A stretch of DNA of 64,000 nucleotides from Trichoplax adhaerens (Eukaryota; Animalia; Placozoa), in the NCBI RefSeq assembly GCF_000150275.1, contig NW_002060949.1:1857836-1921835 (forward strand). Direction: 5' to 3'. Below the pieces are notes generated by a model, which saw only the letters and a program-made list of their open reading frames with translations, was not told the origin of the DNA and made no database searches. The translations under genes were made by a program, and so were the position numbers. Below are positions 6,410-56,400 of the stretch, in pieces; within the stretch, counting starts at the first letter, position 1, and each line of letters begins with the position of its first letter.

Positions 6410-7735
6410 CATTTAATTTTCCTTTATACTGGTAAAAAAGTGATTGCAACTTGTAAGTCATTTCAAGTGTAATGATTAGAAATCAATGTGATGGATTAAT
6501 ATTTTAATGGAGGCATGATTGATTTTGGAGGCAAATACTACTCGTATAGGCGTATTAACCCAGTCGTATACACTAAGATTTCCTTTGCAGAGGCGAAAAG
6601 AGATTGTAAATCCTTTCAAGTATCAAGGCTAGAAATGGATGTGTAGCCTTTCTACATTTCTATTCAATATAAGCAAGATCGATTTTCGAGTAGTCTGACT
6701 GTATGTTATGAGTTCTGTGAACTTCTGTCCACTGGAAGGGGAAGCTTAAAACGCTCGATGAATCTAGTCCAGTGCACTGAGCTCTTCCATTGCATTAGTG
6801 AAAAGTGATTTAAAGCCATTTCAAATGTAAATCAATCTTTTACAAAGGCAATATCAATTTAAGAGCCAAGTATAGCATACTGTTTTTGGCCAACTACGAA
6901 AGAAAGAGAACCCTATTAAGCCGTAGAACAAGGAGTTTCATTGCAACACGAATTCATATTGGCGCTAGTATCTCATTTAAATCAGTGGTATACAGTGAAT
7001 TTTCTTTTACACTAGTGAAAAGCGATTGCAAGCCATTTGAAGCGTAAAGCCTACAGAAATCAATCTTTATCCATCAATATTACATGAAGTCAAGATTGAT
7101 TTTACGGTGAAAAAGTTGGCGAGCAGCTCGGCGACGCTTCTTAAGCGCCAGGGTTTCATTTAAACTAGTGACATGCAGTGAATTTTCCTTTGCACTAGTG
7201 AAAAGTGATTGCAAGCCATTTGAAGCGTAAAGCTTACAGAAATCAATCTTTATCCATCAACATGAAGGCAAGCTTGATTTTACAGTGAAGATTCATTTTT
7301 GAATTTGTAACAAAAAGTTGCATTAAGTGCTTGGATGATCTCATTTAAACCAGTGATATGCAGTGAATTTTCTGTTACACTAGTGAAAAGTGATTGCAAG
7401 CCATTTGAAGTGTAAAGCTTACAGAAATCAATCTTTATCCATCAACATGAAGGCAAGATTGATTTTACAGTGAAAATTCATTTTTGAATTTGCAAAAAAA
7501 AGTTGGCGAGCAGCTCGGCGACGCTTCTTAAGCGCCAGGATCTCATTTAAACCAGTGGCATACAGTGAATTTTCCTTTGCACTAGTGAAAAGTGATTGCA
7601 AGCGATTTGAAGCGTAAAGCTCACAGAAATCAATCTTTATCCATCAATATGACATGAAGGCAAGATCGATTTTACAGTGAAAAATTCATTTTTGAATTTG
7701 CCCCAAAAGTTGGCGAGCAGCTCGGCGACGCTTAT
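6410..7735. repeat. Tandem array of ~180-200-bp units (4 well-conserved copies plus ~3 degenerate upstream copies)
   Basis: cagtgaattttcctttgcactagtgaaaagtgattgcaagccatttgaagcgtaaagc.tacagaaatcaatctttatccatcaa starts at ~6993, 7177, 7361 and 7563. Three units end in aaaagttggcgagcagctcggcgacgctt. Confidence 0.9.
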
Positions 7736-7799
7736 TAGAGAGACATCTCTCCTAGGGTAGCCCATCCTGTCCGTCTATCGTCCGTCATCCTAGCACTCC

Positions 7800-14100: not shown

Positions 14101-14256
14101 ATTTTTTTTTTCTTTTATGCAATGAACGGAATACTTGATGATCTATGAAATTTAAATCAATTACATTTTATGTCTTTTACCTCCAACCATGTCCATTGTT
14201 GCTAAGTGAATTAGTTCAAGTTGATCATTTTAATGTGTGCAAGTTATTTTTCTATC

Positions 14257-17200
14257 ATGATCGACAACGACCATATTGAAATCTGTAATATCAATAATAA
14301 TCGTCTACTTTTTTTTATCTGTTTCTCTTTGATAATGATAACTCTAGCAATTGGTAATGTCGAAGGCGTTCTATTGCGAAGTTTATTTCTATCGCCTTCT
14401 GGAAGTATTCGTGTTAAGGATAAATCAACGTTAACACTAAACTGCACTACATCGTCGTATAATGGTACTACCAATGTGGAAAATATTCAATGGTTTAAAA
14501 TTGGCGATAATAATCAATCGTTATTGCAACCCTCTGGTCAACGTCGAGCCATAAGAGTAGGAGATCATGTTGTAGTCCAACTCCATTGGAATCGGATTAA
14601 TAGTACCGACAATGGCCGATATCGATGTCAATGGTCTCAATTTAGTCAAAATAATGATGTGACTGTAAACGTTGAAGGTAACTTAAAAAAAAAAAAAGAT
14701 TACTCAAATAAAGTTGCAGCCAATTTTTTTCCCCTTGATGTTATTCTACTTCTTTTTATATTTTAAAATCTATAGAGGTTGCTATCAATATTAATAGTAT
14801 ATAAAACATACAAATTATTACTATTACTGTATTAGAAGAGGAAAAAATCTTACTAACAAATTGTCCTTGCTAATGTAATTGCTTTCCAGTTGAAATATCT
14901 TACAGTACAGTATATGACTACCAACCAATTCGACTCTAGCTGATACAATATGATGTGTTGATTTTTCTACCTGTTATAAGCCCACTTCTTGGGAGGTGGG
15001 ATGGATCCACTTATGACCACTGACAGTAGTTTTTAACCGATAATGAATCATTTATTTTTTGTTCTTCTTTCTCTGCTGTTAATTTTTATAAATAGCAATA
15101 GGTACAACTTCTCGGTTTCACAGAGTATAAAAATCGATCAATTACAGTTTATAGTCAAAATTATCCTCTACTACTTTGACATGAAATTATTATGACACTA
15201 CAATGAACATAAAATAGGAGTTACCGTATAAGAATCCATGGACGCATTATCATACTGTACTGTACTTAAGTCGATACTTGCAGATACTACTGGATATGTT
15301 GTTGTAGACGATATCAAATCGATCGTTCAAAATGATGAATAATATATAAGTGGAAATGAAATAATTGTCAATTATAGCCGTTATCAAGTGTGATGATATT
15401 GTAGTTGCAATTGATATGTCATAGCCATTATTAAAATGCAATCAAAAATCAAGGTAGAATAGTGTAGATAAAATTGTTGCTATTCGAAAATCTTGACGTA
15501 CGTATAATAATATTATTTCAAATTGATGAAGCTTATTGATGTAATATTTTATATCATCGATACCATGAAATAGTTGCGTTTATCCAAATGTGAAATTGAC
15601 ATTATCTATAGAGCTTAATCGAAGAATTAACAATAATCTTACTTAATATTAATCTTCTAACATAGTACTATAGGGTATTGTACCAATAAGTTGAAAATAG
15701 ACGTATTGGTATATCATACTACCACAATAAATAAAAAATCCTAATCATTTAACTAAGATATAACATATATGGATAAAAAATAGACAAATTGTTGAAATAG
15801 AAATTGAAGGTAGTGTGTAATTAATAATAATATAATTAGGCTTATTGTAAAGGTTTGGATAATGCGCGAAAATATAATTTTAATGAGTCATCATCAGGCG
15901 TAAATGGTAGTGTCAAAAATAAATGAAAATAAAAAAATGATTCAAAATATTTCTTCAAAAGATAACGAATACTATACAGCTAAAGTAATAATATTATATG
16001 CTATCTGTTATAATACTTTGTATCATTGTTATCATATGTTCGAATGTTATTATTAGTTAAATTAATACTATTGAATAATACAGTATAATTAATATTCTAT
16101 ATGATTTAATTAGGCCCTCCAACATTAGCTATTACCTCAGTGAAAACGCTTTCTGGCTATGTTTATATGAGATGGAAACTTTATAACAGTGGTAATGCAC
16201 CTGTACTTTATCAAGTCTCCCGCACTATTGTCAATAACGGAATAGCATCAACTAATTTAATCATCGGATGTCTGAATACAACTACAAGCTATTGTAGAAC
16301 TATTGCTGTCGACTTCATTGTGGACTATTGCGTCCGAGCCGTCAGGAATCATGATATCGTAATAACGGCGTGTGTACTTCGATATAATGCTTTTGATGAA
16401 GGTATCAATAATTACAATAATTTTTCATTTTATTGAAATGACAGTATATAGAAAAACATTACTGATAATGGTCTTTCAATATTATATTAACTAGGACATG
16501 TATTCTTTTGCTAATAGATTTAGTCGTTAAGTATATACAAAAAATTGATATAAACAAGCTTAACTTTGTCTACTATCCCTTTCCTACTATAATATTTATA
16601 CATGTAGACTGTCATTAGATAATAAAAACTTAGTAATTGAAGTAGTCGGCAAAGCTACAAGTAATTAATACAATTTCATTTTTATTTATGACCTTTAATA
16701 TTATTACTCCGTTTTTCATTTCGTTTTTTGTATACAATATGGTATTGATAGCTATTGCATTTCAATGTATTGCCTAATATATTTCTCCTGTTCAACTGAG
16801 TATTACTAACAGTTCTGATAATTTTTACAAAAGTGCTACAAATTATAGCTAAGAAATAGGATTCATTTTAAATTAATATCAAGTAATGTTGACGCTCTTA
16901 TCCTATACTTTACATTTACAGACTCTACCTATTCAAAACTCTGTAAAGATATTATGTGCTAATAGAAAGCATCGCCATTGCATTCATTAAAATTTATACA
17001 TTTCTATATTGAAATTCAGTAATTACCAATTATAGCTAGTATTTCTAGTACGATTGTAACGATAATAGAATACACGTACGTATAATATCAACGATTCGTT
17101 AGGTTAACCAATAGCAATGGGGTAATTTTTGAATAAGATATACCAGGAGATAAGAAAATGTGTATACTTATAACACTATTAGCTATAATTATGTTTTTTT

Positions 17201-20134
17201 ATACACTTTACGAGCATAGTTAAGTAGGCTCGTAATTAGCAAGTTCGTATGTTCAGTTTATTGATGGATATAAATAAGAGATGCTAAATTTTATTCAATA
17301 GCAACATCTTAACTAAAGGTCTTATTAATTCTTCTTATACTGATTAGTTGTACCATCCCCACCGATCAACTTACATGTTATTAAGGATAAAGGCCCTTAC
17401 TTGAATTTAACATGGGCAACAGCACAAGATTATGCTATTTATTATGACAGAATTGTCAATCATATTCGTCTCTGCTATGATGTACGATTTCCAATCCATG
17501 GGAACCCAACGGTAAATTCATTATGACATCAATAAGTTTAATCAGTGAATTTACTCTTACTGTACACTACCTTTGTCTTATTATTTTATTTATTAATATT
17601 ATTTTAAACTAAGAAATGTACGTACCTTTATCTGAATACTTCTACTATTATCTCTATATTATGTATTTCTAGTATTTTCAGGGATAGTTGATATAGTACG
17701 CCTTTTATGATACTAAATAATAATCTAGTTATAATTAGAAACGAAAATCTATTACAGTTGAATTGGAGTTGCCTTAATGATCCAATTATAAGATTTAATT
17801 AGGTGTATTGTTATTATCGTAATTTATATTACCTTATATGTCTTGCATTATTATCAGTAAAAACAGAATTTGGAATTATGAATTAATTTATTGCGCTCCA
17901 CGTGATTTAATTTCGTTACAAAAACAACTACCTATTTTTAAATGGTTGTATAAATAATTTCATTACTTCAAAAATTATTGAGATATCTAACAGAAGAGAT
18001 CTAATATTGGTATATATTTTTTTCAGTGCCTTGATTTGAATAAACATCGCAAGGCATACTCATTTAATAATAATTTATTACAATATGGCTATCTCTATGA
18101 GTTCTACCTAAGGACTGTTGCCAAAAATAACAAGCAAAGCGCACCATCGTCTAAAATATATACCAACTACTACGAATCTAGTAAGTGTTATTGTTTATAA
18201 TATATGATTATTTCAATAACTATGGTACTACATTATCCAATTAGGCACAGTAGAATACATTTCTAGGTAGTGATATAGATGCAAGCTAAAGTATTAAATT
18301 ACAGTGCTCACAACATCAATTTTATACTTAATGTAGTTGCTAAAATATTATACACCAGTAGAGATATTATGCGTATTTTTATACATTGTTATTTATACCA
18401 GAACATCTAAATTATATTCATCTTTTTATTGTAGCTCCAACAGGAAGTCCAGAGAAATTTATGTGCAATTGTAAACAACCCAGTTTTCTAAAATTGAAAC
18501 GAAATTGTTCGTTCACATGGGAGGTAATACACATATACAATGTCTACATTTATGACATATATTCACTGCTGTTGAATTCATTCACAGCTAATCTCGTAGG
18601 CTGTAGCTAATAATTGTAAATCATTGCACTGTATAATAACAATATTTATAGAATACTGTATTGTATTTTGTGGACACGATTAATTAATCAAATGTATAAG
18701 TATAGCTTCATTTTGCGTAATCGATAATTGTAATTGATTTATTTCTATATTTTAGTATCCACTTCAACGAAGAAATGGTAATTTAACTCATGCCTACATC
18801 AATTTAGTACCATTTAATAATCCTGAAGGAATTGAATATCGTTGTATCGATGGTAATAAATTTCAAGCTGAATTCATACTTTGGACTAATACTTCATACA
18901 ATGGCAGTATTGTTGTATCTAACTCTATCGGCAATAGCTCAAAAGCGCATTGCATGATCGACCTAGCCTACAAGCCGATAACAGGTTTGAAAGATTGCAT
19001 TTATATATAGCTTACAATCGATAAAATTAATACAGGATGAATGCAAATAATATTATATAACTTATACAGTATCTACATATCGTAGATCGCATACATAATG
19101 AATTAACGTAATAGATATATATATATATATATATATTTTGAATTACTAGTGATACCCATGACAACCGATTTTGTTCCGTATACGTCATCCTATTCACCAG
19201 CTGATCAAGGATCACCACTTATGGTTATTACAACATGTGTTTTATCAGTATGCCTATCGCTACTTTTGCTCATGCTTTCGATTGTGCTGTGGAGATATTA
19301 TTCATCAAGGTAAAAACTATATTACTATAAGACATTCTAATATTCTTTTAATTGTGTTGCTTTTACGCTAAGAGATAGTACTATTATAGTATTTACTAAT
19401 TCCCATTAGATATAATTCTACTGTATATTTATTTACGTTTATTTTCGTATATAACATAAATGAATTTCTAAATTATTTTATCAATAGAAGAAGGAAGAAA
19501 ACAGTCACAGAATCATCTCAGAATACGGTAAGAAAATACTACCGATACCATGCTATCTAGTAATAACATTATCAATATTTTTTACTAGTTATTATACAGA
19601 GAAATGATCTAATTATGGTAATTAATTCTTATAACATATTAAGTCATTCCTCTTTTTTAATATTAGCATGTTCAAAGCCGTCCATTACCTCCCCTTCCTT
19701 CAAATTATGATTACGTAGATGTCAAAGATATCTTAAAGACCGATTATACCGAATGGACTGATATGCACGATCAGGACACTTTCTTACATGATTTCCCTAT
19801 TACTGATGATAAGTTACCTGACGTTAATATTTTACAAAGTGTCAAGAACAAGACTATAATTAAAGAACCTCAAAATGATATTGAAGTCATTAATAATCAA
19901 GTTGCTTGCATCGACAACGACTATAATACTAAGAAAGTTTACGATTTATCACCAGAATGTAAAAAAGAAGGATCATTTAGTACTTCACCTGGAGGCGGTA
20001 TATCATTAGGTTATTCAAGTTGTAGATTTGAAATCAAAGTAGCATCAGAAGAGCTGACATCATCATCTTCTTCTGGAGAATATATGCAGGTAACTCTACC
20101 CCCGTTACGAAATGAAAACGGTACTTTGGAGTAA
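14257..20134 (+). CDS. Orphan single-pass receptor: signal peptide, Ig domain, 3 FN3 domains, TM, ~170-aa non-catalytic Tyr-motif tail (~670 aa)
   Basis: Phase-consistent GT-AG exons: 14257-14677, 16114-16401, 17348-17511, 18027-18180, 18435-18523, 18756-18984, 19150-19309, 19488-19527, 19667-20134 (2013 nt in total). Ig signature LTLNC..IQWFK..DNGRYRC. FN3 signatures PSPPINL..LNLTW..YEFYLRT and P..RRNG.L. TM MVITTCVLSVCLSLLLLMLSIVLW followed by RRRKK. An alternative in-frame ATG lies at 14233. Confidence 0.85.
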
Positions 20135-23490: not shown

Positions 23491-23689
23491 CTATGGGCAA
23501 AAGGGGCCCGAAATTTCCCCCAGTGAGTATACGTAAGATATAAAACGAGTTGCTAGATTGGCTTTGCAAAGTACAATATCTGAATGACTATATACACTTT
23601 CCGTGTTACCATATAGTAGTAGAATGATCGAAAAAATGATACGCTGCTAGTGGATCTGTTCAAGGTTCATTACTGAATCAATTCAATCT

Positions 23690-24365
23690 ACTTCGACTAC
23701 ATCTTTTGGATGAGTTTTAGTTCAAGGAATACTGAACTCGTTCCAAGTAGTTGTCTTTAAAGTAAGATTTTACGCAAAGCTTTGAAGACATCTAGTTGGA
23801 CTACTGTCTTCTGGATGTGTTTTAGTTCAAAGTAGGATATTGTGCAAAACTTTGCAGACATCTAGTTGGACTACTGTCTTCTGGATGCGTTTTAGTTCAA
23901 AGTAGGATATTGTGCAAAACTTTGCAGACATCTAGTTGGACTGCTGTCTTCTGGATGAGTTTTAGTTCAAGGAATACTGAACTCGTTCCAAGTAGTTGTC
24001 TTTAAAGTAAGATATTGCGCAAAGCTTTGAAGACATCTAGTTGGACTACTGTTTTCTGGATGAGTTTTGGTTCAAAATAGGATATTGTGCAAAACTTTGC
24101 AGACATCTAGTTGGACTGTGTTGGACTACTGTCTTCTGGATGAGTTTTAGTTCAAGTAGGATATTGTGCAAAACTTTGCAGATATCTAGTTGGACTCTGT
24201 TGGACTACTGTCTTGTGGATGCGTTTTAGTTCAAGTAGGATATTGTGCAAAACTTTGCAGACATCTAGTTGAACTACTGTCTTCTGGATGAATTTTAGTT
24301 CAAGGAATACTGAACTCGTTGCAAGTTGTTGTCCGATATTGCAAAGTAGTAGTTGTAGGATATTG
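23690..24365. repeat. Compound tandem repeat (~60-70-bp core plus a longer variant unit)
   Basis: The core gacatctagttggactactgtcttctggatg.gttttagttcaa(a)gtaggatattgtgcaaaactttgca occurs ~8 times. A variant carrying ggaatactgaactcgttccaagtagttgtc occurs at ~23725, 23970 and 24303. Confidence 0.92.
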
Positions 24366-24606: not shown

Positions 24607-27009
24607 ATGGTCAACCGGAAATTATTACAGCTATCACTGCAATCTTTAATGGCTCATGGTTGCTTGGAGGAAAAAGAAACCAAAGCTTTAATCCAGAAAT
24701 GCTGCCAATCTTGCGAAGGTATGACTTCCAGTGGTTGGAGAGGCGTATATAGGGTTAAGGGACATGATGCAACTTGTTGTTAATCTTCCCACTCCATTTT
24801 TCTGTATTGTCTATGCTATCGATTCTAGTTAGTAGAATTAAAATGGTCGTTTTTCTTGATTAGTTTTTTCCCCTCTATCATACCAGTACTATTGCATAAT
24901 GTAAGTCGAGCGCAGTAAACGATAATTTGCGACTACCTCCAGTCTTGTAAAGGTGTCAACTGTCGTCTTTGCAACTGCAGAATTTGCGCGCCATAACCAC
25001 AACAAGCTTGCGAAACTAGACATAGATACATCGTACTAGTGAAACTGTAGCAATAGAATGTCACCATTCTAGTTCAAGTTTTAGCGTAAATAATATGTGT
25101 AATACAGGCTACAGAGTGATTGATTCGGTATAATATGGTGGGTGAACTTCAATTAGTCTAACAAATAGCACTCCAAATGGAATGGTAATGCATACATACC
25201 TGTAATTGCTTCAAGTATGAAGGCTAATAAAGCTATACTGTAAATACGTTACTGAAAACTAAGTCCTGCTACTTTTCGTAGACGATACAGACTCGAGAAA
25301 GTGGAAACTTGCGCCCCTTATCCTAGATATTGTAGAAAGATGAAAGTTCTTCACCTATTTTTCTTTATGTACAGTACTGTACTACTTTGCGTTGCTCGGT
25401 CATGCGAACACATCGATCGTGAGCAAGACTTACTGTACAAGTCGATATTACTATTTAAAATAGTTAAAATACACTATCTACTGTATATTACAGAAAATTT
25501 CTCCAATGATATATTCCGATCGATTATTAAAGAAATTAATACTCGGATTAAAAAATTCTCATTCGAAATCCGCCATGGAGCCTGTGAAGATGACGATGGC
25601 CAAGTGTACTATTGCTATGTAAGTTCGTGTAAACAAACTAATGCTATTGACTGCCTCTAGTTATATCAAATACTATCATTGTAACACGCGTGAAACTTTC
25701 AGAATATATGTCTGCGACATACTGACTCTAAAGAGATATCATTAGGTGAATACGAAAGAGGATAACCATGCCAAGTTAGCAACTTTCTACTCTGTTAACG
25801 AACTTGTCTTCTTCAACTCTATTGTAAGTTTGCAGAACGTGAGATTAATTTTTCATGCCAATCTTATTGCAATACATGTGATCTCTTCCTTTTCATCAAT
25901 GTAGCTTTTAATCGACGACGTAGATATCACAATACAGAGTATTACACATGATAGTTATACAATTGTGCAGATATCCAGCTTTACTTTCTGTCACATGTAT
26001 TTAGTTAGAGCAAGTGGTAGCCTCACCCGACGGACTTGTAATTGAAAATACTATTCTGCAAGCTAGGGAACAATTTACTGCACGTGCTGCTCAGGTTGGT
26101 TAAAAAAATGTTCTCTATACAAGAGTGTATGTGATATCGTTATACTACGCATTGACTAAATATATTTAATGCTCTCCAGCTAGACTATCTAAATCTTAAT
26201 CATGTTGATTATATTATTCTACAGCGCTCGCTCGCTCGCTCGCTTTCTCACCTTGTCAAAGTAATGGTGTTATTAGTGCGTTGAGGCAAAAATAGATCAG
26301 TTCAGAACTTAAGTTGTAACGGATTGCTTGCTGACATATTAGCTTTCCTAAATTTATATTTTTATCTACAGTAGAATTATTTACTTCATCAATAACCTTG
26401 GCAACCTTAAATAGAAACCGTTTGATAACCTTAACTGTTGCCTAAATTTTATGACCACCACTTCTAAGGAAGACTTCATTAACACTATAGGAATTTCTTG
26501 ATCGACTAGTATGTGATAAATGGTTATCACGAACTGAAGATAAAGAATATCACCTGGGTCCACGCTCTTTACTTGATCTTCTGCCATTCCTTCAAAATAG
26601 AATCAATTCAATTTGTTCTATTTGTTCATCTTTAGCCATACGAGTAAGAAATATCGATGTTCATTGAAAGAATTTATTACATAGTAGTTTACAGTATGGT
26701 CTACGCTACATATCTAATATAACTTTATATAAAATCGACAATTTCAGGCCCAACAATGCCCAAGCTGTCTAAGTAAAGCCCACGTTCATTGCTTATCAAG
26801 ATTTGCCAGTGGCAGGTTAGTTAAAACTTATTTTACAAAGCACTACAGCATACGCAATTCTAACATAACCTGTCCTGGTTATTTCTTACATTGCATGACT
26901 TGAAGATATTTTCGGACTAACTTAATATGCGTAATTCTTGTTTGTTTTCAGGAATTTTATTAAATGTCCACATTGTGATGAAGATTGGAAATGGAAGGAT
27001 TGTGATTAA
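24607..27009 (+). CDS. NSMCE1: Non-SMC element 1 of the SMC5/6 complex (winged-helix plus RING-like), 227 aa
   Basis: Exons 24607-24718, 25494-25618, 25746-25823, 26005-26094, 26491-26643, 26748-26815, 26952-27009 splice in frame (684 nt). Translation includes LQSLMAHGCLEE..EIRHGACEDDDGQVYY..KLATFYSVNEL..KWLS..YHLGPRSLLDL..CSIC..CPSC..HVHC..KCPHCDEDW, matching the recalled Nse1 motif order and C4HC3 RING. Confidence 0.9.
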
Positions 27010-38582: not shown

Positions 38583-40763
38583 ATGGAAGAAAGCTAGACA
38601 AACAACATTGCAGCAGTTTCTGAAGTGTGGATATCTCATCTCAATGCCAAGCATTTCATTTGGCAATGTTTTTTTCGTTCAAAAGAACGACCGAAAAAGG
38701 CTCTACGGTACAGATGTAAGTGTAAATATTGTGCCAAGGAAATGGATGGAAAACCTGAACGCATGGTTGGACATGTTATAAGACTTTGTAAGAAAATTCC
38801 TGATCATGAAAGGGAAAAATATTGCAGGCAGTATGCACAATCAGCAACCGCTATAGCTTTCGCAGGAAATAGGCCAGTGATATACCAAAATGAACAACCA
38901 AAGTACAAACACAAAAGCAATTTTCCACCTTTGAAGGAATTAAAAGGGGACACGGAAAAATTAAATTTGGATTTACTTCGAGCTCTCATTTCAGCAAAGT
39001 TACCCATTTCATGTGTTGATAATTACTATTTTTAAAAATTCCTTACAGATATACAATCGAATTACTAACCAGCAAATAGTAATACCCTTGGCAATGCATA
39101 TTTATCAATACTATACGCTGAAGCATGTCGAAAACGAGATCTTCAGATAAAAGAGAATGATTGTCTGACAATGTTATGGGATGGTTGGACCGATGCCAGT
39201 GGATCATCAATTTACACACTCTCGCTGCTTTACGACTATGATAAGTCGGACATATTCAGTGTACGAGAAATATCCCATTCATACCATACCGCCGAAAATA
39301 TGTATGCAGAAATTACGACAGTTATAAGTGAAAGCAATGTCACATTTAGGAAGATTAAATGTTTACTTACTAATACTGGTAGTGTTATGTTAAAACTTCG
39401 ACGATTAGCTGCTGATAATCATGCTAACGTCATTGCATTGGTCTGCGCTCTACATGTAATAGATACTATTTGCCAGGACGTATGCAGATTAGAACTTGCC
39501 AAGACAACAATGAAAGGAAATTATTCCTTGATGAACTTTATTCAAGCATCCAACATTTGGTTCAACAATGCAGGAGAATGGGAGAATAATCAACAGAATG
39601 TCTATCCTTTCCAATCCTTATGTATTACAAGATGGCATTTGATGATTAAAGTTTGTTTATTTGTTAGATGTTACGAAAATTTCTTAATGGAAATTACAAC
39701 AAAACCTGGCACATCTGAACAGTATCCAGTCCTATCTTCTAACGACACTGATAATCAAGATATTGCAACCATATATCGCCTTCATTTCACAAAGAATGAG
39801 GAACTAATAGAGATTTTAAAACCCATTGGAGATGTCATTGAACTTTTGAAAGATCAGAAGGCAAATATTGCTGATATATATCTTCAGATTATTTTATTAC
39901 ATGTCCATTACAAGCAATTGGAACCGACTTCGTCCAATCAGGCTATAAGGGACACTGTGCAGATTTTATCGAAACGTTTTAACCAGTACCTGAGTCATTC
40001 AATTTATATTCTCTGCCTATTTTTTTGGCCGAAATATCGTGATTTTGCTGTGAGTAGAAGATTTAATGTAACTTATATTGCTAAAGAAGTGGTTAATATT
40101 GCTAAAAGCTGGCGTTTTAATTTACATGCATGTCGAGCACTGTATAGAGATATACTGCTCTACAAAGATGATGCTTTCGCCCCTAGTGATTTAGCCTATA
40201 CGCCATTACATTTTTGGAAGGCTACTATCAATTATGGACAACCGATAAAACAGTTTACGCGCTGGATTTACAAGCTCAAAGGCCATGCTGCTCTCAATGA
40301 AAATTCATTTTTCAGATTTTCAAACGCAAAGCCAATCATCCGAAACGAGAGGACTGTCAATCATTTGCAAATGTACGGCACGATTGAAAGTATGCTTTAC
40401 AGAGAAATCCCAGATGATCAAAGACCAAGGAAAAGAAAAAGACATGCAACCAATGTGGACCATCTCATTTCTTCTACAGAAATGCCAACAGCTATTGCAG
40501 AGGATGAAGCAGAAGTAATTGATTTGTTACAAACACTAGAAAAAATGCTGCAAGAAGATAATACTAATGTTGAAGATGAAGAAGAGGAATTAAGTTTTCA
40601 GGCATCTGAGTTATTTGTGGACGACCTATTCGATTTGAATATATTGACCACTATACATGAAGAATCAAATTGGCCTGAAGTTTCGCTTTCTCAGCAACAA
40701 GGCGAAGAAGAAATCCAAGAAGATATCGAAAATTTCACATTCGCGGATGTATGTTCCATATAA
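38583..40763 (+). pseudogene. Inactivated hAT-superfamily transposase with N-terminal BED zinc finger (~726 codons)
   Basis: One unbroken frame from ATG 38583 with in-frame stops at 38595 (TAG), 39033 (TAA) and 39066 (TAA). Motifs: BED W..F..CKYC..H...C, first catalytic Asp in LWDGWTD, CALH (CxxH), TRW, LHFWK..NENSF dimerisation-like region and an acidic tail. The second catalytic Asp position reads Asn (LTNTGS). Confidence 0.85.
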
Positions 40764-41294: not shown

Positions 41295-44250
41295 TACTGT
41301 ATAATATCTCCCATGTGACAGAATTCTATCGATACAAATACTTCAGTTCTGTATTTCTCGATTTTTCATACATACATATATATATATGTATGTAATTTAG
41401 AATAACAACCCCATATACAGTATCAATTTAGCCCGAATGCTAATATAGATCTACTGTATATCGCCGATATTCCATACTGTATATCTGGATATCTGATTCT
41501 CTCTCTCTATAATCTCTTATGGGAGAGAATTCGTCATGTATGAATTATCATTAAAATATAGTCCGATTGAATACTTATGCAGTGTACAATATTGGTAAAT
41601 ATCTCTTCGCTAATAATACTGCAATTATACAGTGAGTAGACAGTAAATTGGAGAACTGAGTACTTAAAATTATATGTAAACAGTACGCGAAGTGGCCTAA
41701 GTGGACAGTAGGCCCAGCCAGAATAGCTCCGATTACTCTGATACTCAGCGTCAATAACAGTACTGTACTGTAGACCATTCATAAATGGGGATATAACGGT
41801 CAGTGATACTTTCATCATTTATGGACTTAAGAGCAAGTTTAACTTTCTAACTTTACCAGATTCAGATATTTCAGAATCTCTCCATCAACCTCATATATCA
41901 TTCTATTATAGCTTTACTGTATTTTTAAAGAAAAATATGGCCCGAAAGTGACAAAATGTTATGAAACAGCCTGTACAGTACAACGAATCAGGAAACTACT
42001 GTACACAGTAACGGGGGTTTCTATACGGTACTGTATGTACAGTACAGTACCCACATTTGTACTGAACTGTATTGGCATTTCGAAAGTGCTAAGATTAGTT
42101 TACAGTACGGTACAGAAAAATTTCATTTATTACTGTCGAGATTTTAAACTTCTAACCAATTTTACGCGAAAAGTATAGAATATCTAGAAAAATAAGAACC
42201 AAATTGGCATTCCTGAGTTCTTAGGCTACAACTAAGTATAGAATTTATGTAGTTTGGGCCTGATTGAACTTGCACAATTATATCTTTTCAGGGTGCCATC
42301 GAAAATAATCAGATTCTCTACACTACTGTACTCTACTATAGTTATAACATTGAACATTTCATGACCATGGACCATAGAGAAAAACTTCCATTATTTACTA
42401 ATAATCAGATTCTGTACACTACTGTACTCTACTATGGTTATAACATTGAACATTTCATGACCATGGAGAAAAACTTCCATTACTTATCTAGTAAAAAAAA
42501 AGTGACGTAATGGAATCATTGGCCACTAGCCAAGTACAGTACGGTATAACCCAAGTCAAATAACAGCCTGAACCAAAGGGTTCTAACCCAANNNNNNNNN
42601 NNNNNNNNNNNNNNNNNNNNNNNNNNNNNNNNNNNNNNNNNGTCCCGATTACTAATATGAAAGTTACTTAACGAAATTTGAATTGGTATAGAAATGAATG
42701 ATCTCTAGGATTTATGTAAATATTATTGAGAAGGTAGAAGTGATTGATACACATCAGTAGGTACTATTAGTTCTATTGCTCTCTTGCAATTCGTAGTGTT
42801 ATCCTACTGTAGTTCCCCTGTCCCAATTACTTTTGATTTCTATACTGTATATAGTAACCATCCTTATTCGGTAAACATACTAATACGAAAGTTACTTAAC
42901 GAAATTTGAAAAGTGATTGATACACATCAGTAGGTACTCTTAGTTCTATTGCTCTCTTGCAATTCGTAGTGTTACCCTACTATAGTTCCCCTGTCCCGGT
43001 TATTTTTGATTGCTATATATCATATTACAAAAAGTATTTCTAAGAGGATAATGTTCGTTAGTCAGCGATCTGATAGTTACTGAACCTCTGTTAAATGAGC
43101 ACATTATCGTAAACCGTCAGTAAAGCGACGGGAGTTTGCACTAGTACTGTATAATATCTCCCATGTGACAGAATTCTATCTATACAAATACTTCAGTTCT
43201 GTATTTCTCGATTTTTCATACATACATATATATATATGTATGTAATTTAGAATAACAACCCCATATACAGTATCAATTTAGCCCGAATGCTAATATAGAT
43301 CTACTGTATATCGCCGATATTCCATATATCTGGACATCTGATTCTCTCTCTCTATAATCTCTTATGGGAGAGAATTCGTCATGTATGGATTATCATTAAA
43401 ATATAATCCGATTGAATACTTATGCAGTGTACAATATTGGTAAATATCTCTTCGCTAATAATACTGCAATTATACAAAGAGTAGACAGTAAATTGGAGAA
43501 CTGAGTACTTAAAATTATATGTAAACAGTACGCGAAGTGGCCTAAGTGTACAGTACATACAGCAGGCCCAGCCAGAATAGCTCCGATTACTCAGATACTC
43601 AGCGTCAATAACAGTACAGTACTGTACAGTACAACGAATCAGGAAACTACAGTACACAGTAAAACGGGGGGTTTCTATACGGTACTGTACTGTATGTACA
43701 GTACAGTACCCACATTTGTACTGAAGTGTATTGGCATTTCGAAAGTGCTAAGATTAGTTTACAGTACGGTACAGAGAAATTTCATTTATTACTGTCGAGA
43801 TTTTAAACTTCTAACCAATTTTACGCGAAAAGTATAGAATATCTAGAAAAATAAGAACCAAATTGGCATTCCTGAGTTCTTAGGCTACAACTAAGTATAG
43901 AATTTATGTAGCTTGGGCCTGATTGAACTTGCACAATTATATCTTTTCAGGGTGCCATCGAAAATAATCAGATTCTCTACACAACTGTACTCTACTATGG
44001 TTATAACATTGAACATTTCATGACCATGGACCATGGAGAAAAACTTCCATTATTTATTAATAATCAGATTCTGTACACTACTGTACTCTACTATGGTTAT
44101 AACATTGAACATTTCATAACCATGGAGAAAAACTTCCATTACTTGTCTAGTAAAAAAAAGTGACGTAATGGAATCATTGGCCACTAGCCAAGTACAGTAC
44201 GGTATAACCCAAGTCAAATAACAGCCTGGAACCAAAGGGTTCTAACCCAA
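41295..44250. repeat. Direct duplication (41295-42591 and 43145-44250) flanking a 50-N gap, with nested ~100-bp tandem units
   Basis: Both copies start tactgtataatatctcccatgtgacagaattc and end ggttctaacccaa. They are near-identical apart from SNPs, small indels and a 199-bp insert in copy 1. A further local duplication lies at ~42650-43010. Confidence 0.9.
41773..41971. mobile_element. Candidate MITE-like 199-bp insertion
   Basis: Present in duplicate copy 1 and absent from the equivalent site in copy 2 (~43625). Flanked by TGTA on both sides, with imperfect inverted ends gaccattcataa / ttatgaaacagcc. Confidence 0.55.
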
Positions 44251-44497: not shown

Positions 44498-47400
44498 ATG
44501 TTCAAAAGAAAGTCCAAAGCTAGTAAAGACAATGATTTAGCCAAAACGGTAAAAATAGAATAACCGAATGGACGATCTTACCTAAGTACTAAAGTTTACA
44601 GTTTTCAACGACTTTACAGTTGAAAACTTCAACTGTGCCTTCTATGTGTCTGTTGTATTACCAGTTAACAGTTATACTCGCACTCTTTCATTAGCTGTAT
44701 ACATACCATGAAAAATGTCGCTGTGGATTCATTTCAATCGTGTCATGTGTTAATTTAATTAAAAGAAATTTTGTAAAAATAACGCCAGTAACATAAATTG
44801 CCTATTTTGGACAGATATACATGTCTTACATAGGGTAAAATGCTACTACCATATTGAAGAAGGCAGTACTGACACTATTGCACCGGTCGTAATGTTCAAT
44901 GGTTTAGTCTTTCAATGGAAAGAAGACTCACTGTACACTCTTTCTATAGTAGTATATCATAATATAATATCGTACGAATGCATTGGATTAATTTTAAAAT
45001 TGTAGAAGTATATATACATACTGACAAATCTCAGTATAACGCTACACTTGAATACTGTCACCTTCTAATAGTATCCCCCACACCTCCATCATCTACAATA
45101 CTGTAGACATTTGCCAATACTCGAGTATCTTGCCAAACGATGGATGCTTTCGTATTTATTACTAACTTACTTGTGGGCTATGAACCTCAGCAATTATAGT
45201 AATTCTGTACACGTGAAATACAATCGTGTACTGATGCCAGCTTTTGTTACTTTTTATGACTATTAACTAGTACACTCGTAGATATGAAATAGGTACTGTT
45301 TTGACTCGTACTGTATAGTGCGAACGTCTACTCTCACTAGTTAATTCACCAGTTAGGATATCTCTAGGTCAAGCCCTTTAATCGTATCCTATTCATCTAC
45401 ACGGAAAATAGAGTAAAGTAGCACAATGTATATTATAGATTTAACACACGGTAGTTATGAATTGTAAGTAATTTCCAGATAATGCAATGAACGAGTTCTT
45501 TTTCATGCACTTTATATGCATATATATATATACAACACGTATAATGAACACAGCTTGGTATTGGCATGGTCAACAACGATGATGATGATGACGCTAATTT
45601 AGAAGCTGAAATGGCTGCGATCGCTGGCATATCACCATCAAAAGATAAAAAAAAATCAAAGTCAAAAGGTACAGTACATTATTATACCCGCATAATAAAC
45701 CTTCAGTGCACACTAATCATTATCTCAACAAGGTGTGGTGTATTATAAAACTTTAGCTATTCAACATACTTAGAACGAGTTTCGATGTCTAGATATTAAA
45801 ATATTGATATCTCTATGATCGACTTTTTTCTAGAAGTAACCATCAATGAAATACAAAAAATGGCCGCTAAGAACATAATGGATATCGATGATGGCAACAA
45901 TGATGATGATGATGATGAGATAGATCAAGCGGAATTGATGGTTAAATCATTTTTTTAATTAGTTTTAAATAGACTTCCCATCATTATAATATTTAGGAAT
46001 ATTTAACCACTATCATAAGCAGTCCATATAAAGCAAATTATTCTTAATTAAAGGATGAACTAAATGATTTCATTGATGAAGATGACGATATGGCTCACAC
46101 GGAGACAGCAGTCAAGGTAATGATTTTTTGTATTTCATGTGGAGTGGTATAATTTCCACGTCACTTGTATCTTAGTAATTTATGTATAATGTCTCGTAAT
46201 TGTAATTCCACCACACATTTGCTGAAAGTTTAAGCTTACATAATCAATTTACCGATATAAAAACTTAAATGTATTATTTTAAATTATAAAATAACGCTTT
46301 TTTACGTTCATTATTATTATAACTATTGAACATTATTACACAACAACTATTGCCTCTTATTAAGTACAGTATATGCAGAAATTGCAATACTAGTACATAA
46401 ACATTACAATGAAGATGGTATATTGTCATCTTAGGCCAGTGATGAAGCAAAGTCTCTTACTACAGATGATACCTTAGCAGCTTTGCAAGATAGGAAAGCA
46501 ATGTACGAAGCTGCACTAACATTTGCTACACAGTCCAATGATAGTTCACGTATGAGAAGGATTACTCGTGGCTTAAAGGTAATTTATGAGCCATTACGAA
46601 ATCCTATCAGGATTTACCAATGTAATGATAAAAATCTTGTTTAGCCTTCGTATTTGCTGTCAAAATTTTAGTCTATTACAGTATAATGAAACACCTAAAT
46701 AAACAATGTTATCATATCTTTCTATGCAGGATTTGGATTCCATGATTAAAAGTGCTTCTTCCGGTAAACTCATAAATTTGGATGAGATGCCAGGGCCTGT
46801 AAGTGTTGGTGTTTCGCCAGCTCGACCCAGAAGTGATGATAAGCCTTCAGAAACCGTAAAAGCTGAAGCCGATAACAAAATTCAAATATTAACTGAAAGA
46901 CTCTCTCAGTATAAGAAGGCAGCGCTTGCTGCCAAGAAGGATAATAACATAGAATTGGCCAAGCAATTTCTAATAATTTCCAAGGTAGTTGCAGCTATAG
47001 TTACTGCTAAAATTTACAATAACCATGGTCGGTAAACTTAATGCTCAAACATAAATATTTAACTTCCCTATTTTATTTTCATTATGTGACTAAATACAGA
47101 AAATTGAGTCAATGCTAGAATCGGTAAAAGCTGGAAACGACATAGATATTTCGGCTTTAGACCCGCCTACTTACCATGCAAAACCTCCTTCGGCAGCACC
47201 ACCAGAAGTATCACCTTCATCGGACCTACCTGCAAGCGATGAAACTCTTGATGACTCTGCAGCCCCAGTGAGTACGTTGGATGCTCTGACAATGCGGATA
47301 CAACGGTTTTCAACTATTATTGAAGCAGCTAAAGAAGCAGGAAATGGCTCAAAAGTCCGTCGTCATACAAGACTTCTAAAGGTTTATTACAAAGAGAATT

Positions 47401-50400
47401 TTGTACATTATTTTTATACGTAAATTAGATATTGACACTATATAATTGATACAATATTGCGGTTTACAATTTATAGGAAGTACAAAATGCCATGAAATGT
47501 TTTAAACAAGGCTTATCGTATGACTGGGAAGCCGTTCCGACACTGCCAGGTCAGCAGTTTTGCTAGTGTAAAATATGGTCATACATTAGAAACTAAAATT
47601 CGCTCTGGAATACCTACGTATACCGATTGAAGTTATCTCAATTTTACGTCTTGCCTACGAGTTAAACTTTTTCGTTTGCTGGATCTGCTTTACTTATTAT
47701 AATGTTGTATATGATACTGTTTTCATTTTGCACCATAACAATATTTTCTATCATTTGAATGGCTCGTTTATCAATTTTTAAGTTGATTCAAGCAGCTGAT
47801 TATATATCTAGTAAACATGATACAAATGATACTGTATGCTTAGGACTTCCCCCAGTACCGCCACCCGATTCTGGAGAGTCAAACAAATCTAGTGTTACTG
47901 CAAGTCCTAAGAAATCTGGTGGTAATCCTGCAGCTCCTGTAGATACTATGGATGCATTACTCATGAGACTTGAAAAATTTGAAAAGGCAGTCGAAACAGC
48001 CCAAGAAAATGGTAATGAAGCAAAAGCAAGACGCTCTGGAAGGATTGTTACAGTTAGTCTAAATCAATCAATTAATTAAAATCTTATTGAAAGTTAAAAT
48101 TTTACGCTTTACACTTACGATGCATACCTGATTATAATAGCAAATTCAACAAGCAATTGCACATCTTAAAGCCGGCAAACCGTATGATTGGGAATCTATA
48201 CCGGAATTACCAGGTTTGATATACAGTATTACAGAAATACGTACCTATTGTATCCCAGAAAGTATTCTTAAAAATCATTCATATAATGCAAATAAATTCG
48301 TAATTTCGCTTATTGAAAAACGTCAAGTTGCATATAACGTCACTCTTTCCGAAGAAGTCACTTTTAATAACAACTTACATTTTTAATAGGTTTTGCTCCC
48401 ATTCCGTTGCCCAATACAAGCCAGCAACCTGTTAAGGCATCTATTGAAGCTAGCGGTAATATAAAATCTCTAATTTTTTGCAACATAGTATAGCAATAAT
48501 TTTCAGTTTCTCCTTTGTTATCTGTTGATTTTACAGCTTCTAAAGTCACTCCCAAATCGTCCCCCGTGAGTACATTACCCTTGTAGTACAAAATATGAAC
48601 TATACTGCATATGCAGTGTATCTGGCGAAAATTCGCAAGATCTGTAATCCAGTGTATCAATTTTTAATGCTGCCTTTTCAAAAATATTCTGAATAAGATA
48701 TTAAATATTATTACCCCTATGTAAGCTTGCAGGCTATTTGCTAGTATTTAAGAAATAATCTCTATTTATTGTTGTAGACTAAGATGCCGACCCGAAATCA
48801 GCAACAGCTGAAATTTCTCTTAGATAGACAACATCAATTCAAAGCTGCTGCTCTAGCAGCAAAGAAGAAAGGAAATATTGATACTGCCAAGGATTATCTG
48901 AGAAAAGCCAAGGTGCAAACAACTATTTATTTTCGTTACTTGTCATAAAATTTGTAAAGTACGATATGATATTTGTAGATGGCCTTACATCGAACTAGGA
49001 TCCTAACACCTTTATTTGACTTATTTATTAAAGGGCTTTGATCAGATGATTGAAGCAGCTGAAAGTGGATTACCTTGTGACTTGAGCAATGTACAGTAGA
49101 AATTATATAGATATTCGCACAATTTAGCCTTCATACTCGAATCTTTTATTCAAGACGTTTTATAAATCATTACAATTTCTAATATCTTACTTGTGTTATC
49201 CTTTAGTTACCTCCACCACCTAATCTTGAATCAGACTCAAATCAAACAGCGGATAAGAATCAAACTGTCGATGGGCCTATTTCTGCTAGTGATGGGGATG
49301 CAAACGCCCTATATGAACGACTAGATGCTGCGATAATCAAACAGATGGAGGTTACTAGTTAAAACAGCAATCTAAATTCTCGATGTAGTTAAGCTCGTCA
49401 CCGTCGTTAAAATTAGCGGTCATATTGTCTGTCATGATAGGTTTGCTTGCAAAATACTCAATATTATGCCAAACTGGGGGACTTGGAGAATTCAAAACGG
49501 TAAACAAAGAAATGTTCTATTGATACGTTCACAAAAAATAATGAATAATACTTATTATTTTATTTAGATACGAAAAACTAGGAGCCGAGTGCCGTATTAG
49601 TTTAGACTATCTTCGAAATTCAAAGTCTCATAAAGATCCAGTTCCACGTTTTCATTATGAAATTAAAAAATTCACCGTCATCAAGTTGGTATCACTTTAT
49701 ACTCTATACCAGAATTATATTTTCTTTAATTTTGTAAAGAATTTACTGTTAACATATCTATAGGTCCTTTTCGGAAATTAGTAGTTCGGAAGCCTATATT
49801 AAAGTATCTCGGTGTATTAATCTACCTCTGCCGTCAGGTAAAACTGTACAATCTAGAACTAAGTTGTCGCTTGTAACGTTCCAATTCTTAATTACTTGTA
49901 ACTTGTATGTAGATTAGAGTCCAGTAAGCAGAAGCATGTTCTTTTTAAACCTATACTAACGAGTAGTTCTTGTAGGATACACCGCGAACGATTTCCATTG
50001 TTACGTTGCTTATGAATTTCCGTTCCCTTCGGTATGCCAAATTTACCATTGTAAAAGTTCGGCAATACTTACTTCTGATAACTTAAGATTTATTCGTAAT
50101 TACGGTAGGATGCCCCTCAAAGTGGACGAACAAGTACTGTCAAGCACACAGTTAACCCAGGTAATTTAGGGTTATATCTTAGTTATAAATTCTTCCATAC
50201 ACTTGAATATTAATGTCAATGTTTGTAGAATTCAGTGACGAAATTAAAGTCAAGATTGATAGAAAGCAACGATCGCTAGCTAGAATCTTTAAGCGCCAAT
50301 CATTAAAGCTAGAATTGCTTTACGAAAGGTGTTAACTTATCACTAACGCATTCATATTATAGTAGCCATAGTTCTAATTCTTATGAATGTCTACATATTT

Positions 50401-53452: not shown

Positions 53453-56400
53453 ATGGGCCAGAATTGTTCAAAGGCGAAAAAATCAACGGTATCACCATCT
53501 TCATCAACCTCATCGATACCATCGCCGTTACCATTGCCTCCTCAATCCAATATCTTCATTGGCTTGTATGATTATAAAGCATTATCGCCGCAAGATTTAA
53601 GTTTTCGAAAAGGTGAGCCGCTTGAAATTTTAGAAAGCGATGGCGATTGGTGGAAAGCTCGATCGTTACATACTGGCAATGAAGGATTTGTACCGTTTAA
53701 TTATGTTCAATCCCCTAACAGCGATTTAGCCAACCTGTAAGTAAAATCAGTTATCATTTTGGGATAATTTAATTATTGATGAAAAAAATATCAAGCCATA
53801 ATGCTGTGTTAGAACACTTAATTTGTTTTGACCACCTTTCAACGCTATAACTGGCTAGTTCTCTAGAAACGTATTATATATTCAATCGTCAAGAATTACT
53901 TTGTTACCATTAACTATATCGACGTTATGATTGTGTAAATAAGACACAATACTAATTTTCCAACCTAAAACTAAGGTAGTCGTTGTTTAATCTTTCGGAT
54001 TATTCTGACATTTACTGAGCAATAACCGCTAACTATAATCCTTATAACACTGTCGACGCACAGTTTAACGTAGTATTTAATATGGTCTATATCGAAAGAC
54101 ACTTTCGGAAGATTAAAATTATTTCTTGATACGGTATTAGCAGTTTCAATTTTCGTCGTTCTGCATCCCTTTCATTGACTTTAATGAAACCAGACTTTCA
54201 TCCATTGCAACCTTCATTGAGCAAATTACTTACTATCCATACTTACAACCGGGAAATTTTTGAATAGAATTATATCAAAATATCTTTATAGCGGACATAT
54301 ACAGTATAACTTCTTATTTCGATAGCGTTAAAGTGAATCATTTTGTTGCTTTTGGCTATATCAGCTTTCGCCTTTTTGCATTGATTACAAGAATCTTCAG
54401 TAAGATAAGACCGGATTTACTGATTCTAATAGAATTCCTATTAAACCTTTATACTGTTTGAACTTGATTTCTGCGCAATCTACAGCTAATAATTGCAACA
54501 TTACCAATGCAACTTCGAGCACTTGATGTTAAATAGGTAGTTGAAGTACTTTCACCGCAGAAGTCTACAATTTTAATTACTAAAGTAAGAAATAACTTTT
54601 AAATTACTTTTATCCGTCATCTTCCTCATAGTTAGAGGTTATTTGCATACTTTATATGATATTAACAGCATGCATAACACAGACATAATAATATTGTCAT
54701 TATCATACTACATTGATCGAATGCAACGGGTATTCTTCTGACTTTTTTACCCGAAGTCGAATCATGAAAGGATATCAATTAGCCAAATATTCTACTTTGC
54801 TTGCGTGTGACCATTTACGAAGTCCGATAGAATTTATAGTATCCTCAAGAGACTATATATAATCTTACACCTATTTGACAGCCCTAAGTTTCGTAGCCAT
54901 TAAGTTAAGCGTTTATCGATTAATCAATACGAAAATGTCTACCAATCTATGATTTTCCTTATCAGATTGTTAAACTGCTCAAGGACAACCATTTTACTCT
55001 TACTTTTACTACACTGTATGCGATATGAATCAGCTGTATTGAATACTCCATAACTATGCATAAAACGATGCGAAAGTCTGGCTAAAATTCAAATAGAAAT
55101 TCGTATTGTCTTTTTCTTAATGGCCTTTGGTAAACTGGTCTAACTGGAATAAATTTCTATCTGATCGTGACCATCTATCTTTTGCTCTGCTTACATATGT
55201 TCTACGGATTTTCACGATAACTTAACTTTTCTATTCCGTAGTAGAATACTTAGCAAAGCGCTTTAGAGTATCGTAAAGATATTTTAAAGTTACTACAGTA
55301 TCATAATTTCTTCAATAACTTCGGGTGCCTAAACCATGAAGAAAATTTTGATACTCTTCATGATTCTTCGGAAAAATTGACATTTCCATTTTTGTAACCA
55401 TTAAACGATCATTTTTGTAATAGAATCTGTATAGTCGGAGGGAAGGCAGTTGAGTGAGGAAGACAATCAAAGGAAAAAAGAACCTTTAAACGTCTGTAAC
55501 TAACTGTGAGAACTCTTTAAAGTCTATGTTAAAAGGAAAGCGTTTAATTACACCAACCAATAATTTCCCTCTTATGACATACAGTAGACCATGCAGGTAA
55601 AAGAAGAACCTGTTGAGTACCAAAAAAGAAGGAAAGCATTTATACAGTAAAAGCTATTGCCTTGGATTGTAACGGCCTTTCCCCCAAAGTATTCACTATA
55701 TGATTACTTAACCTTTATCCCATCTGTTACTAACGTACGTCGTAAAATATCAATTCTTCTATTACGCTTAATGGCTTAATTTATATTTTTCGTAAATACA
55801 GTGCTTCATCTTTCATTCATCTTATTGCCTATTACCCCATGCATTATTGACTGGACTTAAAATTACTGTCATGCAACAAATAATTACAAAATCAACCATT
55901 ATTAACTAATATATTTTTTTTTAGTTGGTTCTTTCCTGAAATGAAACGTAATGCCGCTGAAGTTCGTTTAATGCAACGTGATGTTAAACGTGGAGGCTTC
56001 TTAATTCGTCATTGTGAAAGCCAACCGAATCAATATGCCTTGTCTTTCCGTGCTGGTGATGTTATCAAACATTATCGTATTCGTAAATTAGATTCTGGTG
56101 GCTATTATATCAGTCTGCAATCGCAATTTAAGACACTGATTGAATTAGTGGAGCACTATCGACAAGCTAAGAATGGTTTATACTGTCGATTAGGAAATCC
56201 TTGTCTGCGAGCAGTTGGCCCAACACCAGGAATAGCCTCGGATGTGTGGGAAGTACCGCGAAATTCTATCAAGTTAACTAAAAAATTAGGGGCTGGCAAC
56301 TTCGGTGAAGTTTGGTCTGGTAAATGGAATGGTACTACGGATGTTGCAGTCAAACAAATGAAAGTGGGTGCAATGAAAAGGACTGCTTTTTTAGGTGAGG

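Follow-up and report, generated by a model that had tools for sequence, protein, structure and literature searches.

p130Cas binds Src through RPLPSPP together with YDYV, and kinase-less immunoglobulin superfamily (IgSF) receptors of the nephrin type serve as substrates of Src-family kinases and as docking partners of SH2/SH3 adaptors. The early coupling of phosphotyrosine signalling to surface receptors other than receptor tyrosine kinases (RTKs) is poorly documented outside bilaterians. Here we analysed a 64,000-nt stretch of the Trichoplax adhaerens contig NW_002060949.1 (1,857,836–1,921,835; hereafter the window, within which positions are counted), for which an earlier annotation made from the sequence alone (the original prediction) had proposed a receptor gene with a p130Cas-like Src docking site. 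Genome-wide counts refer to the species' own assembly (105.6 Mb in 1,414 contigs). Nine exons on the + strand encode a protein of ~670 a.a. with an Ig domain, a single transmembrane (TM) helix and a cytoplasmic tail that has no kinase domain. In this tail, RPLPPLP (19679–19699, +), a class I SH3-ligand consensus that contains PPLP and is identical in the orthologue described below, is followed after two residues by the tyrosine pair YDYVDV (19706–19723, +), with Y14 in YDYV (19706–19717) and Y16 in YVDV. Our favoured but tentative reading is that the gene encodes a single-copy placozoan type I IgSF candidate SH3/SH2 docking receptor, with a Src-type kinase as the most plausible partner. The receptor is known so far from placozoan sequences only. 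Since receptors of this kind are already well known from bilaterians, what would be gained is evolutionary breadth and not a new principle. Together with the ~five tandem Src paralogues found nearby, the placozoan receptor makes a concrete candidate pair; were docking to fail, the receptor would simply join the orphan IgSF proteins that carry a motif match.

The parallel with p130Cas/BCAR1 holds in one respect: in both proteins an RPLPxxP ligand lies N-terminal to YDYV, and the use of RPLPSPP plus YDYV by p130Cas, on which the original prediction had drawn, is borne out by the literature. In contrast to p130Cas, the receptor has no SH3 domain, YxxP substrate domain or CAS_C domain in Pfam scans of all exons, and its YDYV is replaced by YDYA in the orthologue, where RPLPPLP is kept. 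The gap between the two elements also differs, being 2 a.a. in the receptor and about 20–25 a.a. in Cas. The single CAS_C match in the Trichoplax genome is a Cas orthologue (L006, C1414:10213030–10216488) with YDVP/YDIP/YDTP repeats upstream. Neither RPLPxPP nor YDYV was seen in its 422-a.a. C-terminal open reading frame (ORF), so that the idea of the animal's own Cas sharing the same bipartite Src site was not borne out in that ORF.

The FERM-kinase linker of FAK (RALPSIP plus pY397-AEI) is comparable in that a PxxP element precedes a YAE(I/V)-type Src-SH2 site, and Y16 of the orthologue reads YAEV. FAK differs in being a cytoplasmic kinase, in its spacing of ~20 a.a. and in having no homology to the receptor. 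The linker exon of the FAK gene in the Trichoplax genome (L010, C1408:3969225–3969350) reads ...EEDEDEDDYETIENL and contains DDYETI, which may be the counterpart of the vertebrate DDYAEI as a site of autophosphorylation and Src-SH2 binding; this suggests that a Src-SH2 docking grammar exists in Trichoplax.

Nephrin, Neph/Kirre, Dscam-Dock, PECAM-1 and SIRPalpha resemble the receptor in their type I topology, in an ectodomain of the Ig (plus FN3-like) type and in a tail that is rich in tyrosines and has no catalytic domain. YDYV also fits the YDxV motif of nephrin, though this match is lost in the orthologue. No sequence relationship to this group is detectable, and the receptor carries a single Ig domain instead of many. 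To our knowledge, a perfect class I SH3 ligand such as that of the receptor is not among the documented docking motifs of nephrin. By analogy, the receptor may work in kind like the docking sites of nephrin, PECAM, FAK and Cas, while being homologous to none of them.

Class I cytokine receptors offer a further comparison, since they too are kinase-less, carry a membrane-proximal proline motif and follow the logic of a borrowed cytoplasmic tyrosine kinase. A cytokine-receptor-like protein, in which the proline motif would be a Box1 for a JAK-type kinase, could account for a Pro-rich motif ~20 a.a. below the TM helix and for FN3-like ectodomain modules. The receptor differs from that class in lacking WSxWS and the conserved cysteine pattern: no W[ST]xW[ST] occurs in any + frame between 14.0 and 19.3 kb, and the membrane-proximal cysteines, encoded by exon 6, are absent from the orthologue. 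Furthermore, the motif is an SH3 ligand and not a FERM-binding Box1, and no JAK-specific Pfam match was found in the genome, although the positive control of that search was uninformative. The Box1/JAK reading was rejected on these grounds, and we regard it as most improbable.

The docking elements lie at the beginning of the last exon. Exon 9 (19667–20134, +; AG acceptor at 19665–19666) encodes a 155-a.a. part of the cytoplasmic tail with seven conserved tyrosines, followed by the stop codon (20132–20134). Read from 19667, it gives HVQSRPLPPLPSNYDYVDVKDILKTDYTEW...VYDL...GEYMQV..., in frame with the ORF at 19763–20134. The ATG-based ORF list begins only at 19763, downstream of RPLPPLP, and therefore conceals it, as had been pointed out before; the placement of HVQS-RPLPPLP-SN-YDYVDV at the start of the last exon, in frame with that ORF, was exact in its coordinates. 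The preceding TM exon terminates with ...LWRYYSS in phase 2, and because the mini-exon 8 brings the frame back, the Arg of RPLPPLP comes to lie 23 residues past the membrane, close to the ~25 a.a. originally proposed. RPLPPLP contains the class I core [R/K]xxPxxP and has the optimal Src/Yes form RPLPxLP in both species, and the Val at −4 (VQS-RPLPPLP) also fits the extended Src/Yes consensus psi-xx-RPLPxLP. The literature names RPLPPLP a canonical class I SH3 ligand, in agreement with the class I assignment of the original prediction.

A word search and a full HMMER scan of 1.84 billion representatives retrieved only one homologue of the tail and none beyond it: P0001, a 123-a.a. ORF on a 1,885-bp genomic contig (L005) of the Logan run SRR30664516. 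The same searches found no annotated model of the Trichoplax receptor protein. As dS between the two sequences is ~1, the source of the run is presumably another placozoan lineage. In its own genome the tail has no paralogue, and a paralogue search with exon 2 gave just one marginal, distant match (E 0.015). The alignment with L005 begins at the same acceptor (window 19664), and the intron ahead of exon 9 is only ~60% alignable between the two. The TM exon of L005 also ends in phase 2, and its mini-exon, of 37 nt compared with 40 nt in the window, likewise restores the frame. The shared acceptor, the low alignability of the intron, and the TM-exon phase with its frame-restoring mini-exon support the exon model, which is mirrored in the orthologue.

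Over the exon 9 tail, identity between the two species is 82%, and codons differ synonymously in 47 cases and non-synonymously in 28. The Nei-Gojobori rates of non-synonymous (dN) and synonymous (dS) substitution are 0.103 and 0.987, giving a dN/dS of 0.105. With such a ratio at dS ~1 and this identity, the tail is a real polypeptide under strong purifying selection. It is more conserved than the last ectodomain exon, exon 6, which is 70% identical (53/76) and whose two cysteines are both absent in the orthologue. Exon 7 is 71% identical overall, but 28 of 30 residues of its TM stretch are identical, and the adjoining extracellular stalk is divergent. The motif region of the orthologue reads RVQS-RPLPPLP-TN-YDYAEV, so that RPLPPLP, all seven tail tyrosines, the YxxV at Y16 (YVDV/YAEV) and YMQV at Y139 are kept. 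The conservation expected of both RPLPPLP and YDYV in homologues was thus found for the former, which is identical, and not for the latter, which reads YDYA in the single orthologue. Since the orthologue has TNYDYA, three readings of this segment are not conserved: YDYV of the Cas type, YDxV, and the immunoreceptor tyrosine-based inhibitory motif (ITIM).

The genomic distribution of the heptapeptide was examined with a degenerate DNA pattern. Its 4 genome-wide matches, set against the 3 of the reversed control, give the bare string no significance at the DNA level. Three of the 4 matches encode RPLPPLP. The other two such sites, L007 (C1411:4626186; ...PPFPRPLPPLPRPL...) and L008 (C1413:7436866; ...VPRPLPPLPPLPLPRPRPRPRPP...), both lie inside proline-rich low-complexity stretches, and the receptor tail holds the sole isolated RPLPPLP in the genome, within a selectively constrained coding exon. 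The weight of RPLPPLP rests on this isolated position in a constrained juxtamembrane coding segment, not on the string. Scanning metagenomes for DNA that could encode PLPPLPxNYDY returned 0 matches.

Docking through RPLPPLP is favoured because an isolated exact match is conserved together with Y16-xx-V and seven tyrosines in a constrained tail. In the proposed mechanism, the juxtamembrane VQS-RPLPPLP would recruit the SH3 domain of a membrane-anchored (myristoylated) Src-family kinase without a requirement for prior phosphorylation. Engagement of the SH3 domain would open the kinase, which could then phosphorylate the adjacent tyrosine pair as well as the remaining five of the conserved tyrosines in the tail, and the phosphorylated tyrosines would in turn become SH2 docking sites. 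Simultaneous engagement of the SH3 and SH2 sites by one kinase molecule is unlikely, since only 2–4 residues separate the PxxP from the tyrosines; sequential use of RPLPPLP and the tyrosine sites, a switch between them, or binding in trans would be more plausible. We infer binding, phosphorylation and the identity of the partner from these sequence features, and Src specificity, the parallels with Cas and the ITIM, and a receptor/kinase module are unproven.

Several observations weigh against this docking receptor. Counted as DNA, the motif pattern is as frequent as its reversed control. The motif is conserved no better than the tail on average, and in one orthologue only: at 82% identity per site, eleven invariant motif residues would be expected by chance with a probability of ~0.11 (0.82^11). 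The best-conserved blocks of the tail, which are fully invariant, lie elsewhere, at residues 61–95 and 113–143, and dN/dS is 0.18 for codons 1–32, which include the motif, compared with 0.087 for the remaining tail. YDYV, YDxV and the ITIM match of SNYDYV are lost in the orthologue, and the 2-a.a. spacing between RPLPPLP and YDYV is unlike that in Cas or FAK, where ~20–25 a.a. separate the PxxP from the tyrosine. Ligands of the RPLPPLP type are also bound by further SH3 domains, that of p85 among them, and PPLP is compatible with class II WW domains. Finally, the FN3 identity of the three ectodomain modules is unconfirmed.

These data bear directly on the possibility that the resemblance is coincidental, with the tail being conserved for other causes, for example binding through blocks 61–95 and 113–143 or a conserved polar TM helix, and RPLPPLP-SN-YDY having no specific docking role. 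The equal pattern counts (4 and 3), the conservation of the motif region at the tail average with a dN/dS that is, if anything, higher (0.18 vs 0.087), the loss of the exact YDYV in the orthologue and the post hoc discovery of the match among many possible motifs would all be explained in this way. By contrast, the other two RPLPPLP sites sit in low-complexity proline runs, whereas the receptor combines a seven-residue match to the optimal ligand with an accessible, probably disordered juxtamembrane segment, a constrained tail and conserved tyrosines, which gives it the look of a docking site. We therefore consider coincidence rather improbable.

Alternatively, the motifs may be functional but read by proteins other than Src: RPLPPLP and PPLP by Nck/Dock-, Grb2-, Crk-, p85- or cortactin-type SH3 domains or by class II WW domains, and Y16 (YVDV/YAEV) and Y139 (YMQV) as YxxPhi endocytic signals of the AP-2 type or as SH2 sites for adaptors. 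The features kept in both species are generic, namely a class I PxxP with PPLP and two YxxPhi motifs, and YDYV fits the Nck-SH2 motif YDxV used by nephrin. A Crk orthologue has been reported for Trichoplax in the literature, and SH3 matches are numerous in the genome. This alternative is weakened by the YDYA of the orthologue, in which YDxV is lost. In addition, a class I ligand with Arg at −3 and Leu at P−1 is the optimum of Src/Yes and not of Nck, Crk or Grb2. We consider readers other than Src somewhat unlikely, and slightly less probable than the Src-type docking that we favour.

The change to TNYDYA also weighs against an ITIM-type inhibitory receptor, in which SNYDYV would recruit a SHP-type phosphatase. 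SNYDYV matches the consensus (S/I/V/L)xYxx(I/V/L), as had been stated, but this is true of the window only, as TNYDYA in the orthologue misses it at both −2 and +3. The site is also single, with no second ITIM or immunoreceptor tyrosine-based switch motif (ITSM) for a tandem-SH2 phosphatase. Such a receptor is highly improbable; the ITIM reading, and with it the YDxV/Nck reading, was weakened by the orthologue.

The gene model was built from open segments in the AT-rich window (GC 0.28–0.39), and gave nine + strand exons with AG/GT at all junctions and phases that run unbroken from start to stop (1, 1, 0, 1, 0, 1, 2, 0). The nine-exon structure originally proposed is thus coherent, and it is mirrored in the orthologue. 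Exon 1 (14257–14677, +; ending in phase 1) starts with the ATG at 14257, an alternative ATG being present at 14233, and encodes a signal-peptide-like hydrophobic stretch and the Ig domain before the donor AAG|GTAACT at 14678. Exon 2 (16114–16401, +; AG/GT, symmetric phase 1-1) holds one complete beta-sandwich module of FN3/Ig-like type. A second, FN3-like module is split between exon 3 (17348–17511, +; AG/GT, phase 1 to 0), with the N-terminal half (PSPPINLHV...LNLTW), and exon 4 (18027–18180, +; AG/GT, phase 0 to 1), with the C-terminal half (YLYEFYLRTVAKNNKQSAPS). Likewise, the third, membrane-proximal beta-sandwich module has its N-terminal half in exon 5 (18435–18523, +; AG/GT, phase 1 to 0) and its C-terminal half in exon 6 (18756–18984, +; AG/GT, phase 0 to 1). 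Exon 7 (19150–19309, +; phase 1 to 2) encodes the extracellular stalk, the TM helix LMVITTCVLSVCLSLLLLMLSIVLW and the basic stop-transfer sequence RYYSS(R), and the frame-restoring, 40-nt exon 8 (19488–19527, +; AG/GT, phase 2 to 0) continues with (R)RRKKTVTESSQNT.

Family scans and PDB sequence searches were run exon by exon. The Ig domain of exon 1 was detected by Pfam Ig_2 with 33.2 bits (cut-off 27; E=6.4e-8), and also by Ig_3 (30.3 bits, cut-off 30) and ig (23.6 bits, cut-off 21.8). Read directly from the sequence, the ATG is followed by a signal peptide, LLFFICFSLIMITLAIG, and the single TM helix by RYYSSRRRKK, a type I topology that fits the positive-inside rule. No exon gave a Pfam match to the FN3 profile in these exon-wise scans, in which an exon boundary divides two of the three modules, and phmmer searches of PDB with exons 2, 3 and 6 individually gave nothing significant (E>=0.46). 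The nearest ESM atlas clusters of exon 2 are fn3/Ig-like (0.94, a language-model lead), and its single-sequence AlphaFold2 (AF2) model is mostly beta at low confidence (predicted local distance difference test, pLDDT, 56). The FN3 hallmarks of exon 3 were seen by eye only, with no family match. Exons 2, 3+4 and 5+6 are probably three candidate FN3-like beta-sandwich modules. Of the Ig/FN3 receptor originally described, the Ig part is therefore confirmed by Ig_2, and the FN3 part is unconfirmed exon by exon.

The 174-a.a. tail gave no Pfam match, including none to a protein kinase domain, so the protein is not an RTK. The ESM atlas contained no usable look-alike of the tail, and its AF2 pLDDT was 34. 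Taken together, these results agree with the earlier claim that the receptor has no catalytic domain, and indicate a non-catalytic tail that is probably disordered. The TM helix (19210–19295) bears the polar residues TT, C, S, C and S, and this conserved polar character may point to packing against the helix of a partner or to self-association.

Two Src-type kinase genes lie further along the window on the + strand. Kinase A (53453–57074) has the N-terminus MGQNCSK, an SH3 exon extending to ~53737, and SH2 and kinase domains at 55941–57074; kinase B (59932–62882) has the N-terminus MGACSCKK, an SH3 exon at 59932–60258, and SH2 and kinase domains at 61668–62882. Both carry Pfam SH3_1, SH2 and PK_Tyr_Ser-Thr together with N-terminal MG acylation signals. 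Their best PDB relative is c-Src (3.7e-121), with the alignment reaching into the Src C-terminal tail, followed by Abl at ~1e-100. The SH3 domains are nearest to those of HCK, Lyn, Fyn and Lck and have the ligand-contact residues ALYDY, D-LSF, WW and P-x-NY. The SH3-SH2-tyrosine kinase order, the best match to c-Src and the retained ligand-binding residues confirm the original identification of two Src-family kinases. At the DNA level, A and B are 98.2% identical over the kinase domain (836 bp) and 88% over the SH2 part (55919–57074 vs 61682–62882), and their N-terminal unique regions differ.

Kinases A and B form the near edge of a Src-like cluster of ~88 kb and ~five genes (C1408, 1.911–1.999 Mb in the genome). 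Three further intact-looking Src-like kinase domains lie on the − strand at C1408:1972377–1998772, 52–78 kb past the end of the window. The cluster also contains a fragment of a kinase domain that includes TAG and TAA stop codons (C1408:1979799–1980179). No Src-like kinase-domain match of at least 54% identity was found in the genome outside the cluster.

The receptor gene ends 33 kb ahead of kinase A, and at least four unrelated genes lie in between: an Nse1-like gene, a RanBP-type zinc finger gene (− strand), a hAT-like ORF and a CC2D1/Lgd-like gene. The proximity of receptor and kinases noted originally thus amounts to 33 kb with these genes intervening, and the linkage is loose. This arrangement is relevant to the proposal of a genomically linked receptor/kinase module. 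That all matches of at least 54% identity fall in one ~88-kb cluster with the receptor 33 kb from its edge speaks for the module, and the chance of a random gene lying that close is an estimated ~0.2%. It is opposed by the intervening genes, by the lack of a receptor paralogue in or beside the Src cluster, by the rarity of functional gene clustering in animals and by the post hoc nature of the coincidence. A linked module is accordingly very unlikely, and its extension to an early-animal receptor/kinase module is not supported, as a tail homologue was found only in one other presumed placozoan. It is also doubtful, though less so, that the gene represents a kinase-less IgSF receptor specific to the placozoan lineage, located beside the expanded Src cluster and hard-wired to Src-family kinases through a compact SH3-ligand/tyrosine cassette, which would make it an independent early-branching invention of immunoreceptor-like, non-RTK phosphotyrosine signalling.

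The remainder of the window contains several other features. The Nse1-like gene is represented by an exon at 25301–25660. An intronless ORF of 530 a.a. at 39171–40763 (+) matches DUF659 weakly (E 7e-6, below the cut-off), and is probably a hAT-type transposase-derived gene. Three exons at 46706–48079 (+) encode CC2D1A/B DM14 domains (E ~1e-8), indicating an Lgd/CC2D1 orthologue. A 50-bp run of N (42592–42641) is flanked by a direct repeat (41295–42591 vs 43145–44250) that consists of two blocks of 487 and 630 bp with 95–97% identity, and points to a recent duplication or, alternatively, to an artefact of assembly around the gap. Degenerate tandem repeats with 79–91% identity between copies occupy 6970–7737 and 23686–24333, in GC-richer stretches.

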